Positions 18,807-28,338 of a DNA stretch of 64,000 nucleotides are shown in pieces (position 1 is the stretch's first letter; every line of letters starts with the position of its first letter). The notes beneath the pieces are model-generated. The model ran no database searches, was not told where the DNA came from, and saw only the letters and a program-made list of their open reading frames with translations. The DNA is taken from the IMG/VR virus record IMGVR_UViG_3300035183_000733, positions 186,001 to 250,000 of that record; one strand, given 5' to 3'. Both the position numbers and the translations under genes were made by a program.

Positions 18807-21800
18807 TCAAGGATTCTCAAAAAATCCGCACGTTTTCTTGCCCTGCCTGCACCACTCGTCGAGGAAGCACACGAACAGGAAGTTGTCGAGGGTGAACCTT
18901 TCCCATGGCGGGAGGTCGTCGCTCGTGAGCACTGGGTGCAGCTGCTTGAATAATTGCGGCGCTATCGCGACAGCTGGGTACGGGGTTAGCGATATGGTCT
19001 TAACCACCGCCATCGCAGCCGCCATCGCTTCCGGCGTGACAGTGGGTATGCGCGAGTGGTCGAGGTTCAGTTTCTTTAGGCCGAGCAGTTCGGCAAAGCT
19101 CTTATCTTTCGCATTCTGGAATCCCTGCGCTATGTCGAGGAACGGTCCGAGCTTATCCTCTACGGGCTTAAACGAATCCTCCACTATGGATACCATAATT
19201 TGTTTAAGATCTATCGGACTCAGCGTCGGGAATGGAACCGTCTGGGCAGGGAACGCGTTCATGATGCCCTCGACGCCGACCTTCAACGAACCTCTCAGCA
19301 GCTCGCCCGGCACGGATATTCTTATCTGCGGCGGCTTAGTAGGGTCCGGCAGGCTCGGCAGTTGCATCTTGACAACCATTTTAACCGAGTCCTTGAGCAT
19401 GTCCTTTATAGACACCTTCGACGGGTTTGGTACCTCCACGTTAGGCATGGTGCCGAGAACGTTCCTTGCCAGCTCTTTTAAATTACCCGGCAACGCCGGC
19501 CTGTTGCCAAGCAGCTTCAGCATGTTCTCGGTCGATATACCGTTGACTGCGGCGAGCGTCAGTTGGTCGAGCACGGCGAGTCCAATCAATACCGGCCCCG
19601 GTATTGGCGGCAACGATAAACCCTTAGTCGTGCCCTTGCACTGGTACGGGTTTACGAACACAACGCCCTCGATCCCTATCTCCGCGAGGATGCCGAGCCC
19701 TTCCGGTGTTATCTTTGATTTCGCTTTACCTATGAACTTCACCAATGCCTCGCGCACCTTCTTCAGATAATCGTTAAGCTCGTTCGGCACTTCCGGCAAC
19801 CGCGGTATCGAAGGCAGCTCTACGTCTTCCAGCCCAAGCTTGTCTATCTCCGCGAGCAACTTCGTCTTAAGATTCATCTTCTCGACGGACGGCACCATCA
19901 ACTGAGGCAGATTAAGCTTAGCCGCCTTCTTCAGCTGGTCAATGATCTCCGTTATCGGAGGTGGTTTCGGATTTACGGTTGATCCGTCTTTCGGGAACTT
20001 TAGGTCCGGTATTTTTATCTTGTCTATCTCGGCCAGTATTGCGTTCTTGAGCTCAGCACGCTTCTGGTCTATCGACGCGTTAGGATCGAGTGCGTTGAGC
20101 CGCGCCGTGCTTGGCAACTGCGGCAGCTTCTGTATGTTTTTTATTATCTTGTCCTTTATGTCCTCGAGCAATCCAGACGAACCGTCCGGGTTCAGCAGAG
20201 GCTGGAAGCCTGGCACCTGTATTTGATTTATCAGGTTTTTTATCGGGGCCTTGATGCCGACGCCGAGCTTGTCTATGGTCTTTATTATCGACTCCTCCGC
20301 GTTTGCTCCGAAGTCATCACCTGGCCTCAGCGATATTATGAACTTCTTCTCGCCGTTCGGCCCTATGTAGAACACGACCGGTGAAGGACATATACCACAC
20401 AGCCCAATGAATATTACGAATATTCCCACCTGCAGCGGTATAACGGCTATAGGTATCCAGATTATCGGGAGGGGTATTTTTATCAGTCCGCTCGGATTAG
20501 GTATTGTAAGCCCTATCGGCCAGTACCTGAAACCACCGCTACCAGGCAGCGGCAGTATATTGACGGCAGTTGCGTATGCAGCAAAGCGCACCCAGTAGCA
20601 CCACTTTGTAGGGTTGGGTTTTGACGGGTCCATACTCAGTAGAGACTCCGCACCGAGCGGGTCGCTGCCGGCTCCGTCCGGCTCCGTCTGTTCTGGCGGC
20701 GCGGTATTTAATGCGCATGGAACTGTCAAGTACTGGCCGCGCTTTGTCGTGATGTCCGCGATAACCTTCTTGTGCGATTCTTGCACGAACAGAAAATCGG
20801 ATCTCAGCTCCTGCGTCTTTGCCATGTACCGCTCGGACGACTGCCTAACATATTCTATTATGTTGCCGAGCCATTGCACGTCGGCTGGCAACTGTTCGTA
20901 TGCGTTTCCGTATGCGAGGAGGTACTCGACCTCACTAACAGCAAATAACTCGAGCGCGCTGATAAGATCGGCATGCGCCGGGTTTATCACGTTCTCTTTG
21001 GTAAACGACACCTTGTTCTCCCACTCCTGTGTGAAGTTCTCATAGAACGCCCTGAACTTGGACACGTCGCCTATGAAGCTGCCCTTGAATACTTCGGCGC
21101 CGGAGCCCTTAAGGTTTGACGCGGCGTCCGCGGCGTTTGCGGTTAATCCCCTCTCCTCCCTCGTGAAAAATTTCTCGTCGTCATCCCATATATTGTATAG
21201 CCTGTCATACAGAATACCGTGCGGTGTCTCGTTAGGCGGTACAGGCAATATGGTGGTGTCCTGGTCGGAGAACATGTAAGTCTTCGGTCGTCCGGCGAGA
21301 ATATTGGCCCTGTCTATGGGGGTGTATTTTATTTCGAGCCTGAACGATTCGTTTGTGTTAGAGTTGTTGCTGTTCTGCTGCTGCACAGCAGTCGTCCTGG
21401 TCGTGAACGTCGTTATCCTGGTGTATATTGAATCGCCTGCGCCGCTGAACAGCCCTGCGAGACGTTGCTCGAGGAACCTGAACCTCTCGTACTCTGCGTT
21501 GCTGCCGTACTGCTGCGTGTTGACTGTCGTGACGTCGGTGTTAAGGAACGGAGCTATCTTGTTCTGCTCCATTGTGAGGTTGTCCTTGGTGGTCTGCAAA
21601 TCCGCTTTCAGCTGATTCAGATATGCCTCGTCGTCCTCAAATAATTTCTTGGCGGCTTGCCAGTCTGAGTATTGTTGCTGCGAGTACTGAGGCGTATAAG
21701 TTGCGTTCGACGCGTTTTGCGCGGCGCCAGCAATCCCGCTTAACCCCGCGTCTCCGGCGGCCGTGGACACTGCACCAGCCACACTGCTCACAGCATTTGC

Positions 21801-22601
21801 TGTTGCGTTCCCTATGGCGTTAGCTATGCCGGACACGTTGGACGTATAGTTCTGGGGGTTTATTATCTTGTCGAGCTCGATGAACTTATCTCTGTCGTCG
21901 TCGCGGATGGGCTGGAACCTGTCTATCTCCGCCTCAAGCCTTCGCTTCTCTATGATTAACGGGTCGAATATGCCGAGTATCTCATCGAGCCTCTGTACAC
22001 GTTTTTTGTAGTACCGCTCGAATATGCTGAAGTTGTAGTAGAGTTCCTCGAGATTTATCTCGGTCTCCCTGACCTTTGTCTCCCTGTCTATCAGGACGTT
22101 CAGCTCGTCCGCTATGCTTTGCATCTTGCCGACGCAGTCGAGCATCTTATTCTTATCCTCGTCCTGAAGTTCGAGTATCTGGTCGAGCTCCTTCTCAAGC
22201 TGACTTATCTCCGCATTCAACTCGAGAAGATCCTTATCCGATGGTGCGGCGTCCGGGTCGTCGGAGTTAGGGTCCGGGAATTCGTTGGGCACCTCGCAGG
22301 ATATGGCGGCGTCAAGCTCCTCTTGTGTGTACACGAGCGGCACACCGTCCTCCGGGCATTCGAGCACCCCTATTTGCGCTTCCACTATCTTGGCCGTCTC
22401 GTTCTCGAGTGCTATCGCCTCCCTGCTCTGTTTATCGAAGTCTATGTCTACGTAAAGTATTTCGCCTGCCTCGAGCAGCAACGTATCGAGGTCGCGCGAG
22501 GTGTTTACGTTCGAATAGTCGAGGTCCGGGAATTTCTCCTTGGCGAGCGCCAATGCGGTCTCGTATGGAAAGTCCAGCGTATGTGAAAATGCAAGTATCA
22601 T
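18807..22601 (-). CDS. Large hypothetical protein (1264 aa; coiled coil plus Pro-rich half), possibly virion-associated
   Basis: Long uninterrupted ORF with strong codon bias. Confidence 0.8.
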   Translation of the reverse strand: MILAFSHTLDFPYETALALAKEKFPDLDYSNVNTSRDLDTLLLEAGEILYVDIDFDKQSREAIALENETAKIVEAQIGVLECPEDGVPLVYTQEELDAAISCEVPNEFPDPNSDDPDAAPSDKDLLELNAEISQLEKELDQILELQDEDKNKMLDCVGKMQSIADELNVLIDRETKVRETEINLEELYYNFSIFERYYKKRVQRLDEILGIFDPLIIEKRRLEAEIDRFQPIRDDDRDKFIELDKIINPQNYTSNVSGIANAIGNATANAVSSVAGAVSTAAGDAGLSGIAGAAQNASNATYTPQYSQQQYSDWQAAKKLFEDDEAYLNQLKADLQTTKDNLTMEQNKIAPFLNTDVTTVNTQQYGSNAEYERFRFLEQRLAGLFSGAGDSIYTRITTFTTRTTAVQQQNSNNSNTNESFRLEIKYTPIDRANILAGRPKTYMFSDQDTTILPVPPNETPHGILYDRLYNIWDDDEKFFTREERGLTANAADAASNLKGSGAEVFKGSFIGDVSKFRAFYENFTQEWENKVSFTKENVINPAHADLISALELFAVSEVEYLLAYGNAYEQLPADVQWLGNIIEYVRQSSERYMAKTQELRSDFLFVQESHKKVIADITTKRGQYLTVPCALNTAPPEQTEPDGAGSDPLGAESLLSMDPSKPNPTKWCYWVRFAAYATAVNILPLPGSGGFRYWPIGLTIPNPSGLIKIPLPIIWIPIAVIPLQVGIFVIFIGLCGICPSPVVFYIGPNGEKKFIISLRPGDDFGANAEESIIKTIDKLGVGIKAPIKNLINQIQVPGFQPLLNPDGSSGLLEDIKDKIIKNIQKLPQLPSTARLNALDPNASIDQKRAELKNAILAEIDKIKIPDLKFPKDGSTVNPKPPPITEIIDQLKKAAKLNLPQLMVPSVEKMNLKTKLLAEIDKLGLEDVELPSIPRLPEVPNELNDYLKKVREALVKFIGKAKSKITPEGLGILAEIGIEGVVFVNPYQCKGTTKGLSLPPIPGPVLIGLAVLDQLTLAAVNGISTENMLKLLGNRPALPGNLKELARNVLGTMPNVEVPNPSKVSIKDMLKDSVKMVVKMQLPSLPDPTKPPQIRISVPGELLRGSLKVGVEGIMNAFPAQTVPFPTLSPIDLKQIMVSIVEDSFKPVEDKLGPFLDIAQGFQNAKDKSFAELLGLKKLNLDHSRIPTVTPEAMAAAMAVVKTISLTPYPAVAIAPQLFKQLHPVLTSDDLPPWERFTLDNFLFVCFLDEWCRQGKKTCGFFENP

Positions 22602-26263: not shown

Positions 26264-26306
26264 GTCCCTCGGACAGATCCGAAAACACGCGGCCAAATTT
26301 AGAAAG

Positions 26307-26380
26307 TGGAGCAGAAGGGACTCGAACCCTCATAAGCCTGCTTGCAAAGGCAGGTGACCAGCCAGTTGGACCACCGCCCC
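26307..26380 (-). tRNA. tRNA-Ala(TGC), 8-nt anticodon loop as sequenced
   Basis: Acceptor GGGGCGG/CTGCTCC with G3-U70; stem CCTGC/GCAGG; loop CTTTGCAA; T-arm GAGGG-TTCGAGT-CCCTT. Confidence 0.85.
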
Positions 26381-26904: not shown

Positions 26905-27021
26905 AAAATGGTCGCGGCACATCCAGCAAAGCAAGGACCCGGTGGCTCCACTAAGAGGATAGTCCTATGCGCGAGTTGTCTAATCTCGGCACGCCTTACC
27001 TCAGGCCCCACTTTTACACTA

Positions 27022-27036
27022 CCAATATCAAAGAAC
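27022..27036 (-). promoter_or_regulatory. boxA-like antitermination motif (GTTCTTTGATA)
   Basis: Resembles the rrn boxA consensus GYTCTTTRAMA; located just after the second tRNA of the operon. Confidence 0.35.
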
Positions 27037-27044
27037 AAACTCGG

Positions 27045-27113
27045 CGGTAGCGACGGGGATCGAACTCGCTATCCCGAGAGAGACAGTCCCGGACCTTGCC
27101 ATCAGGCGCCACC
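27045..27113 (-). tRNA. Degenerate tRNA-Asp(GTC)
   Basis: Acceptor GGTGGCG/CGCTACC, G73; loop CTGTCTC; shortened D-arm; T-stem mismatch. Confidence 0.55.
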
Positions 27114-27315: not shown

Positions 27316-27321
27316 ATAAAT

Positions 27322-27349
27322 AAAAAAGCCCTGAATTTCTTCAGGGCTT
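27322..27349 (-). terminator. Attenuator terminator immediately upstream of the tRNA operon
   Basis: AAGCCCTGAA-GAAA-TTCAGGGC followed by T6, ending 6 nt before tRNA-Asp. Confidence 0.85.
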
Positions 27350-27402
27350 GTTAAGTATCGCGTGAATAAAATATCTTATCGCATCGTTAGCTCAACAAGC
27401 CC
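27344..27402 (-). promoter_or_regulatory. Antiterminator helix
   Basis: GGGCTTGTTGAG (27402-27391) pairs over 12 bp (one G-U) with CTTAACAAGCCC (27355-27344), which includes the terminator 5' arm. Confidence 0.8.
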
Positions 27403-27468
27403 AATGTTATCCTCTTCCGCGCAATCCGCAGCAGTAAGCATAAACAGGTATGTCGAGTTAGTTTTCAT
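27376..27468 (-). CDS. Leader peptide MKTNSTYLFMLTAADCAEEDNIGLVELTMR (30 aa) of the tRNA-operon attenuator
   Basis: Manual translation; control block GCT GCG GAT TGC GCG GAA GAG GAT at 27432-27409; below the ORF-track cutoff. Confidence 0.8.
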   Translation of the reverse strand: MKTNSTYLFMLTAADCAEEDNIGLVELTMR

Positions 27469-27482
27469 TGCTTGTTATATTC

Positions 27483-27490
27483 TATATATC
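27483..27490 (-). promoter_or_regulatory. GATATATA putative late promoter for the leader/tRNA operon
   Basis: Exact octamer 14 nt upstream of the leader ATG. Confidence 0.6.
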
Positions 27491-27606: not shown

Positions 27607-28338
27607 ATGAAAATAGACATACCAGCAATCCAGAAGGTTTTCCAGGCCAAATCATACACGTGGGACCCGCAGATCAACCTCGTCGGCGTGAGGACCACTC
27701 TACAGGTGGCGGACGTGTTCAACGACCTTATGTGCACCGTGTGGCGCCAGGAGGTCATGCCCGATGGATTGACTCCTGCGGAAAAACAGAACTGGCTGAA
27801 CATTAACCTGTTCGTCGGCAGCGACCTCAAGCCGCTGAAGGTGGACGGGGACTTCGGACCGAAGTCGCAGTATGCGATGGAACAGTACCTGCTCGTGGCG
27901 GGTAAGATGAGAATGAAATCGTACGTCATAACGACGGACCCGGGAATATACTGGCTTAACAACCCGATGAGCAAGCTCGGCACGGCCGTGCTCAAGCCGG
28001 GACAGTACGTGAACAGCCACGCCATTGGATTCCACCAGAACAAGCCGGAGCACAGGGCTCTCGTGCAGGTTGGGAAGGTCACGGTTTACCGCGACGGGGA
28101 CAAGGACGGCGTCGCAGAGGCGTCGGCCACTACGGAGACCGGACTGTTCGGCATCAATATCCACGGGGCCAACAAGGGGATGATCTCTTACAACATCGGG
28201 AAGTGGAGCGCAGGGTGCCAGGTATTCCAGAACTGGTTTCACAAGGAGGAGTTCCTCGGCATCTGCGACAAGTTCAGGGTGACGAAGGGCAACAAATTCA
28301 CGTATACGCTCATCGAGGAGAAAGACCTCGCAGCATAA
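27607..28338 (+). CDS. Putative endolysin/cell-wall enzyme: peptidoglycan-binding insert plus YkuD-like catalytic motif
   Basis: LKVDGDFGPKS PG-binding motif; GINIHGA...WSAGCQV. Confidence 0.6.
   Translation: MKIDIPAIQKVFQAKSYTWDPQINLVGVRTTLQVADVFNDLMCTVWRQEVMPDGLTPAEKQNWLNINLFVGSDLKPLKVDGDFGPKSQYAMEQYLLVAGKMRMKSYVITTDPGIYWLNNPMSKLGTAVLKPGQYVNSHAIGFHQNKPEHRALVQVGKVTVYRDGDKDGVAEASATTETGLFGINIHGANKGMISYNIGKWSAGCQVFQNWFHKEEFLGICDKFRVTKGNKFTYTLIEEKDLAA

Follow-up and report, generated by a model that had tools for sequence, protein, structure and literature searches.

A phage leader ORF that probably senses its own codons to control a tRNA array

The stretch of DNA analyzed here (herein referred to as the window) comprises 64,000 nucleotides (nt) of the IMG/VR contig IMGVR_UViG_3300035183_000733 (373,759 base pairs (bp); positions 186,001 to 250,000) and carries on its minus strand a 30-codon open reading frame (ORF) that precedes an array of transfer RNA (tRNA) genes. 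It is likely that this ORF is the leader of a functional, codon-sensing, ribosome-mediated transcription attenuator of the trp, his and ilv kind, through which the phage probably makes the tRNAs of the array only when the cell decodes the matching codons slowly. The regulatory codons are cognate to the product of the operon itself: eight consecutive codons of the leader (AADCAEED) specify alanine, aspartate, cysteine or glutamate, and every tRNA called in the array by ARAGORN reads Ala, Asp, Cys or Glu (A/C/D/E) codons. An attenuator of this sort had been proposed in an earlier reading made without database searches (the sequence-only reading); the conservation of the leader in diverged lineages and the co-variation of codon runs with tRNA arrays in other large phages, both established computationally, argue in favor of that interpretation.

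The leader peptide is laid out as MKTNSTYLFMLT-AADCAEED-NIGLVELTMR and was predicted as a gene of 30 amino acids (aa) by gene callers in independent assemblies. Read on the minus strand, the promoter motif, the ORF, the codon block and the terminator lie where the sequence-only reading had placed them (table 1), the T6 tract does end 6 nt before the first tRNA gene, and the other 22 codons of the leader contain, as had been counted, a single Ala/Asp/Cys/Glu codon (GAG, codon 26). The accompanying claim that the block samples all six anticodons of the array holds once wobble is admitted (GCT, GCG and GAT are decoded by wobble), but one of the tRNAs concerned has an abnormal 8-nt anticodon loop, which reads as "ttgc" and not as a plain TGC. 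Runs of at least eight A/C/D/E codons occur only twice in the six frames of the window (~128,000 codon positions), and the block is one of them; the other (DDCCAAAE; 21373-21396, minus strand) lies out of frame in a 1264-aa ORF (18807-22601) and is taken as chance background. The existence of this second, unrelated run would suit the view that the leader is simply a small protein-coding gene, furnished with a promoter and a terminator of its own, that its match to the array is a coincidence, and that the tRNAs are transcribed by constitutive leak-through or from an unseen promoter; so would the resemblance of the promoter and terminator to the signals of other genes in the window, and the conservation of the peptide over its full length in three lineages. 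The probability that such a run lands in a given 30-codon ORF is, however, ~4e-4, and the 20 chance sites in IMG/VR that code for ADCAEED have no tRNAs nearby.

Downstream of the block, the leader RNA has alternative structures with the geometry of a switch. Region 2, which starts 6 nt past the block, pairs with region 3 in a helix that had been described as 12 bp long and that consists in the window of 11 Watson-Crick pairs and one G.U pair. Region 3 and the 5' arm of the terminator have the sequence AAGCCC in common, and antiterminator and terminator are mutually exclusive, in agreement with the earlier claim. The terminator is expected to work on the minus strand only, because there is no T-run on the plus strand. 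The full leader folds better than shuffled sequences (z = -4.4), in a fold that holds both the 1:2 hairpin (region 1 with region 2) and the terminator, and removal of the 3' arm of the terminator allows the 2:3 hairpin to fold. The predicted energies in the window and in two loci of diverged lineages (L003 and L013, described below) are -15.6, -15.6 and -17.2 kcal/mol for the terminator, -21.4, -20.5 and -22.8 kcal/mol for the antiterminator hairpin and -23.4, -21.8 and -16.1 kcal/mol for the 1:2 hairpin; the last of these, which is an energy prediction only, has the same register in the window and L003 and another in L013. The position of the block relative to these structures was assessed with a footprint model, in which the footprint extends 12 nt beyond the first base of the codon in the A site and folding is confined to the RNA on the downstream side of the ribosome, together with the nascent transcript. 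With the A site anywhere on codons 13-19, no more than one of the 12 bases of region 2 is covered and the nascent transcript forms the 2:3 helix, which is lost with the A site from codon 21 onward; the block would thus be the final segment on which a ribosome could wait without masking region 2.

We hypothesize that transcription begins at the GATATATA promoter and that a ribosome starts on the 30-codon leader as RNA polymerase proceeds. Were charged tRNA-Ala, -Asp, -Cys and -Glu plentiful, the ribosome would clear codons 13-20 and cover region 2 (codons 23-26), upon which the terminator hairpin would form and transcription would stop at the T-run that ends 6 nt short of the first tRNA. Were any codon of the block decoded slowly, the ribosome would wait within the block, leaving region 2 just beyond its footprint and able to pair with region 3; this pairing would take the 5' arm of the terminator, and the polymerase would continue into the tRNA genes. 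With zero translation, region 1 would hold region 2 and the terminator would form. We infer from this scheme a leader that is translated, and a transcription that is coupled to its translation; termination and read-through would then follow the speed of decoding, with a shortage of tRNAs as the presumed cause of slow decoding. The outcome would be a supply of tRNAs on demand that is shut off once decoding is fast again, and the circuit would form a closed negative-feedback loop, because the sensing codons are those read by the tRNAs it produces. The leader appears to have a promoter of its own, since the upstream protein gene (27607-28338, plus strand) is divergent from it, and the tRNA array would depend on read-through, since no promoter motif was found in the window between the terminator and the first tRNA.

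The flanking 243-aa protein has thousands of homologues, and the leader adjoins it in three lineages that differ considerably (61-68% identity between their flanking proteins): the window and its 97% relative L002; L003, L004 and L012, with a flanking protein of 68% identity; and L013 (~64% identity), which emerged when the 30-aa peptide was searched against 1.84 billion protein representatives. A 261-aa protein downstream of the array is likewise common to all three. The leader peptides of the three lineages are MKTNSTYLFMLTAADCAEEDNIGLVELTMR (window), MKTNSTYLFILTAADCAEEDNIGLVELSVR and MKTTATYKLLLTADCAEEDYIGLVELTMR, and the start, frame and stop of the leader are preserved in L002, L003 and L013. 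As the sequence-only reading had asked of homologous loci, both ORF and block are kept. Between the ORFs of the window and L003, 6 of the 8 differences fall at third codon positions, and across the three lineages only 2 of 42 columns vary in the core from the block to region 2, as compared with 14 of 36 in codons 1-12 (Fisher p = 2e-4). Indeed, 21 of the 24 nt of the codon block are identical in all three lineages, every third position included, and region 2 is invariant in all of them. A core frozen at synonymous sites is not explained by constraint on a protein and argues against an ordinary small gene. Region 3 differs in each lineage yet remains complementary to region 2 (12 bp in the window, 9+1 bp in L003 and 12 bp in L013, with another G.U pair); the terminator of L013 carries two compensatory pair changes (T-A to A-T and A-T to G-C) and one change of A-T to G.T; and the pairing of region 1 includes a change from G.U to A-U in L003 and another register in L013 (ACAAGCU with GGCUUGU). 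The arrays themselves have been reshuffled, duplicated and interrupted by ORFs across the lineages, and all called tRNAs still read Ala, Cys, Asp or Glu codons.

Other searches for this leader returned little. Further homologues of the flanking protein (P0004, P0006, P0009, P0010 and P0011) stand in a baseplate-like operon without an A/C/D/E array, and tblastn of the leader peptides against GenBank phages gave no matches. Scans of IMG/VR with the terminator 28-mer, the block 20-mer, the region-2 17-mer and a degenerate ADCAEED pattern recovered only the contig of the window and chance sites without tRNAs; all 12 matches of the region-2 19-mer in JGI metagenomes were due to chance, as was the single match of the block 21-mer among GTDB genomes (in a metagenome-assembled genome of the Coriobacteriales).

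Leaders with other codon runs stand before other tRNA arrays in large phages. A 20.9-kilobase ENA contig (L045) from a related phage, which encodes 25 tRNAs and a 242-aa protein 61% identical to that of the window, has two such leaders: the first (MKTFVNIQQQQQQSYIVGCHSIV) is followed by a terminator and three tRNA-Gln genes, and the second (MKNLINISNRNTQLVLVVFLQLFFNS, with the run ..LVLVVFLQLFF..) by a terminator and tRNAs for Phe, Phe, Val, Leu, Val, Arg and Leu. A pattern scan of IMG/VR for ATGAAAAC followed by six CAR codons yielded 29 loci. Short in-frame MKT..Q6-7 ORFs in L050 (= L056, L072), L051, L052 (= L063) and L057 each have 2-4 tRNA-Gln genes behind them, within 61-72 nt; no tRNA lies near the 21 matches in long ORFs or out of frame, or near the short in-frame ORF in L073. 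Five distinct Gln leaders (MKT..QQQQQQ(Q)) precede 2-4 tRNA-Gln genes. A fourth class (..RQLSLEQLI..), found by scanning the ORFs upstream of tRNAs in the collected loci, is represented by L050, in which MKNITTYNSLRQLSLEQLIEEKSVWPDNVRL precedes Leu(taa), Arg(cct), Arg(tct), Leu(caa), Ile(tat) and Glu(ttc), and by L051, in which MKNVNTYTASQRQLSLEQLILSCKAGLCSFIK precedes Leu(taa), Arg(tct), Leu(caa), Glu(ttc), Ile(tat), Leu(tag) and more; a search with a degenerate RQLSLEQLI pattern found no loci beyond those already collected. The agreement extends from amino acids to codons: AGA, ATA, TTA, TTG, GAA and CAA in L050 and L051 match the anticodons of their arrays, and in L051 10 of the 11 codons of the run (drawn from AGA, CAA, TTG, TTA, GAA, CTA and ATA) are Watson-Crick cognate to tRNAs of the locus.

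When the longest cognate run of each leader was tabulated for the amino-acid set of its own array and for the other sets, the own array fitted each leader at least as well as any other and, in all but one case, better. The own runs are 8, 8 and 7 codons for the Ala/Cys/Asp/Glu set, 6, 6, 7, 6 and 7 for the Gln set, 7 for the Phe/Val/Leu/Arg set and 4 and 3 for the Leu/Arg/Ile/Glu set, with no run longer than 3 for other sets in any class; the narrow cases are L050 (4 for its own set versus 3) and L051, which is a tie on run length (3, with none higher). All 11 leaders begin with ATG AAA and have their stop codon 58-145 nt (mostly 58-101 nt) before the first tRNA, and in 10 of the 11 the nascent RNA pairs the 5' arm of the terminator with a segment 6-14 nt past the codon run. 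The suggestion in the sequence-only reading that the block should change with the content of the cluster is therefore borne out by the Gln, Phe/Val/Leu and Leu/Arg/Ile/Glu leaders, each of which matches its own array. A coincidence would have to recur for all of these arrays, down to the level of codon and anticodon, and because of this recurrence across four amino-acid classes we regard an ordinary small gene, or a chance match, as excluded for practical purposes and its probability as minimal.

Leaders of different codon classes (the window, L013, L050, L051, L045 and L057) have beginnings in common (MKTNSTY, MKTTATY, MKNITTY, MKNVNTY, MKNLINI and MKTVININ). These shared beginnings suggest one leader family that diversified by swapping its codon run, as opposed to independent inventions.

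The same comparative series bears on what the ribosome would respond to. Acidic stretches can destabilise translating ribosomes, as in leaders of the mgtL or erm type, and an attenuator that is driven by its nascent peptide or by ion or drug conditions, and not by tRNA supply, would be in keeping with the Asp/Glu-rich block of the window and with an alternative-helix geometry that suits any stall signal. However, the runs of the sister leaders (poly-Gln, Leu/Val/Phe and Leu/Arg/Gln/Glu/Ile) are chemically unrelated, each matches its own tRNAs, and the choice of codon, beyond that of amino acid, follows the anticodons (AGA, ATA, TTA); we therefore consider a stall of this kind very unlikely. 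A switch made of RNA only, with direct binding of a tRNA (as in a T-box) or of a protein by the leader RNA and no more than an incidental ORF, has a similarly slight probability. Terminator and antiterminator alternatives alone are no proof of a ribosome, and the predicted fold includes a small conserved hairpin (CUGCG/CGCGG) within the codon block. Set against this, no T-box or other Rfam family is matched at E<=1, codons 1-12 show a third-position bias, the frame, start and stop are kept in all lineages, the start and the spacing of the stop hold in every one of the 11 leaders, and runs of 6-7 identical codons are suited to a ribosome and not to a single specifier.

Several observations weigh against codon-sensing attenuation of the tRNA array. 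The phage is known from metagenomes only, and the RNA polymerase that reads the GATATATA promoter may or may not obey intrinsic terminators. The covariation of helices that the sequence-only reading had put forward as a check is found in part: region 3 keeps its complementarity and the terminator has its two compensatory pairs, but with region 2 invariant the changes in the 2:3 helix are one-sided only, and the helix of L003 is down to 9+1 bp. The GCT codon and the Ala-GGC tRNA are not consistently paired, L003 having GCT without a called GGC tRNA and L013 the tRNA without GCT. The Gln leader L052 shows no clear antiterminator in its minimum-energy fold, and a leader is missing before some arrays of related phages, such as the first one of L045, which stands directly behind an ORF; the tRNA array of Sphingomonas phage PAU lacks a leader as well. 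Co-transcriptional folding, also named as a check, gives the 2:3 helix in the nascent RNA, but in full-length RNA at equilibrium the terminator of L003 is still favored (P 0.79-0.93), and equilibrium folding that permits pairs spanning the ribosome, which we judge unphysical, favors the terminator in all lineages. Because the terminator often wins at equilibrium in full-length RNA, the switch would have to be kinetic, as in trp.

No close relative was found among 50,697 GenBank phage records, in which blastn matched single tRNAs only, and most proteins of the window are without family assignment; genes for ribonucleotide reductase, a NUDIX/HD protein and a 5'-nucleotidase are consistent with a large phage. 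The promoter-like motif GATATATA occurs in 12 copies in the window versus 1.67 expected (12 copies being reached in 0 of 100 shuffles), precedes the ATG of many ordinary genes by 4-22 nt and, at three copies, directly follows a hairpin and T-run terminator. Shine-Dalgarno sequences are absent before the phage genes of the window, the leader ORF included, which hints at a host of the Bacteroidota type.

The tRNA array of the window (table 1) contains more than the six tRNAs that the sequence-only reading had listed, since additional tRNA-like genes, which it had omitted, lie in the 333-nt gap after the first tRNA. One is a second tRNA-Asp-like gene, of which L013 has a near-identical copy (980-1048; 23.5 bits against the Rfam tRNA model). 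Copies of tRNA-Asp(GTC) with the loops CUGUCUC or CUGUCUA, found in the window (27043-27113, minus strand), in L013 (980-1048) and in L003 (2411-2484 and 2638-2713, minus strand), have a pyrimidine at position 37 in place of the usual purine; these changes could be decay, or a loop change of the kind proposed to evade tRNA nucleases (PMC10264068). The tRNA-Ala-type gene at 26306-26380 has the loop CTTTGCAA with one extra C, whereas the loops of its counterparts in L003 and L013 have the normal length of 7 nt; a quadruplet-reading tRNA, a defective tRNA and an assembly indel are all conceivable explanations.

Directly after the first tRNA-Asp lies a tRNA-like structured RNA, which is intact in L002 (466-616, minus strand), L003 (2486-2637, minus strand) and L013 (1140-1273, plus strand) and is built from a closing stem resembling an acceptor, several internal hairpins and a T-arm; the copy in the window is missing part of the T-arm. 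It folds alike across L002, L003 and L013, with 15 of 39 predicted pairs changed on both sides in the three lineages, and has no Rfam family match. A second long tRNA-like element in L002 (270-440, minus strand) has an acceptor (GGTAGTG/CGCTACC) and a T-arm around a ~90-nt insert, and its counterpart in the window (~26905-27042, minus strand) has lost the T-arm. Among AT-rich relatives, L045 (1-16520; also L046, L026 and L042) has 25 tRNAs in 16.5 kilobases, grouped by amino acid (Asn, His x2, Thr x2, Lys x4, Ile x3 and so on), with homing-endonuclease-like ORFs interspersed among them; a gene for a class I aminoacyl-tRNA synthetase lies nearby.

Table 1. Positions of the leader elements, the tRNA array and example promoter-like sites (window coordinates)
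Feature	Position	Strand	Remarks
Promoter motif GATATATA	27490-27483	-	leader ATG 14 nt later; conserved in L002, L003, L013
Leader ORF, 30 codons + TAA, MKTNSTYLFMLTAADCAEEDNIGLVELTMR	27468-27376	-	ATG 27468-27466, TAA 27378-27376
Region 1 (CTCGACA..CCTG)	27457-27445	-	pairs region 2 in untranslated RNA; anti-antiterminator or pause hairpin; minimum-free-energy fold
Regulatory codon block GCT GCG GAT TGC GCG GAA GAG GAT (AADCAEED), codons 13-20	27432-27409	-	
Region 2, GGGCTTGTTGAG, codons 23-26	27402-27391	-	antiterminator 5' strand; starts 6 nt past block
Region 3, CTTAACAAGCCC	27355-27344	-	antiterminator 3' strand; last 6 nt = start of terminator 5' arm
Intrinsic terminator AAGCCCTGAA-GAAA-TTCAGGGCTT, 10-bp GC-rich stem	27349-27326	-	terminator scan
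Terminator tail TTTTATTTAT	to 27316	-	T6 = 27327-27322, ends 6 nt before tRNA-Asp
tRNA-Asp (GTC), first array gene	27315-27238	-	ARAGORN; weak against Rfam tRNA models
Decayed copy of conserved 130-150-nt tRNA-like structured RNA	27237-27117 (approximate)	-	intact in L002, L003, L013
Second tRNA-Asp-like gene, anticodon loop CTGTCTC (GTC, U at position 37)	27113-27043	-	not called by ARAGORN or Rfam at threshold
tRNA-Ala (GGC)	26904-26830	-	ARAGORN/Rfam scans
tRNA-Cys (GCA)	26807-26728	-	ARAGORN/Rfam scans
tRNA-Glu (TTC)	26717-26633	-	ARAGORN/Rfam scans
tRNA-Glu (CTC)	26585-26511	-	ARAGORN/Rfam scans
tRNA-Ala type, G3:U70, TGC in 8-nt anticodon loop	26380-26306	-	ARAGORN reads 'ttgc'; Rfam tRNA 42.9 bits
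GATATATA, example sites	57972, 14892, 5641	-	
GATATATA, example site	27579	+	

The elements of the window leader have close parallels in characterized systems. The trp, his, leu, thr and pheA leaders are alike in having a short ORF with a run of regulatory codons, alternative 2:3 and 3:4 helices (with a 1:2 hairpin that for the phage leader is a prediction), an intrinsic terminator before the first regulated gene and a spacing at which a stall would free region 2; the closest likeness is to the multivalent ilvGMEDA (Ile/Leu/Val) and thr (Thr/Ile) leaders, which hold several amino acids in one block. In contrast to these attenuators of amino-acid operons, which control biosynthetic enzymes, the regulated genes here are tRNAs, the product decodes the sensing codons in direct feedback, the system is in a phage, and four amino acids and five or six isoacceptors are mixed. 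The leader also has no sequence similarity to Rfam leader families, and the genes behind it are not of the biosynthesis, transport or synthetase kind. A T-box riboswitch or a catalogued leader family is ruled out by the lack of any Rfam match in scans of the window and of the leader (gathering threshold and E<=1). Attenuation of a component of the translation apparatus is known from pheST of E. coli, in which a leader with Phe codons controls phenylalanyl-tRNA synthetase; pheST, however, concerns a synthetase protein gene, one amino acid and a cellular genome, whereas the phage leader stands before the tRNAs themselves. T-box elements are similar in that the state of a particular tRNA is reported by a transcriptional terminator/antiterminator switch that controls genes with a role in translation, but in them the RNA itself contacts uncharged tRNA, by means of a specifier codon and a conserved T-box sequence and without a ribosome, whereas the phage leader is predicted to act through a translated ORF.

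Phage-encoded tRNAs are known to replace depleted or cleaved host tRNAs as a counter-defence (PMC10264068, PMC11555353, PMC11464382). These studies describe the action of the tRNAs and not a cis-acting sensor that switches them on; some tRNA-Asp copies of the present arrays have unusual anticodon loops, a type of change that is discussed in one of them (PMC10264068), and our analysis identified no defence system directed against Ala, Asp, Cys or Glu tRNAs. The sequence-only reading knew of no attenuator on a tRNA array, and among ~8.4 million full-text papers and preprints we likewise came upon no account of tRNA genes, whether of phages or of other origin, under the control of a leader-peptide attenuator, which is absence of evidence only; nor did the full-text literature yield a description of cis-regulatory control of phage tRNA genes.

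On balance, we favor the broader view that the window leader is a member of a widespread class of regulators in large phages, consisting of short MKT/MKN leaders whose codon run is tailored to the array that follows and through which the phage would gauge decoding in the infected cell codon by codon and transcribe just the matching tRNA genes, whose products would in turn act back on their sensor. In its strongest form, such a regulator would detect and answer the loss of specific host tRNAs, be it through host shut-off, a poorly matched host or a tRNA-cleaving defence. Candidates for the shortage that is sensed are a mismatch between the codon demand of the phage and the tRNA pool of the host, the loss of host tRNAs during infection, and a tRNA-cleaving defence; the AGA, ATA and TTA codons sensed in AT-rich phages fit a mismatch with the host pool as well as they fit defence.

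Phages have been known to carry tRNA genes for more than 50 years, and it is still debated whether these serve codon compensation or an escape from tRNA-targeting defence. If the present reading is true, the sensor would show that phage tRNAs are supplied on demand, when their own codons are read slowly, and the codon run would reveal, from sequence alone, which codons each phage treats as limiting. Textbook attenuation would thereby be extended to a new class of target, namely RNA genes that complete the feedback through their own product. The set of leaders compared here (Gln; Phe/Val/Leu; Leu/Arg/Ile/Glu; Ala/Asp/Cys/Glu) puts the idea within reach of a direct test, and leaders of this kind may serve as compact, programmable sensors for the availability of chosen tRNAs.

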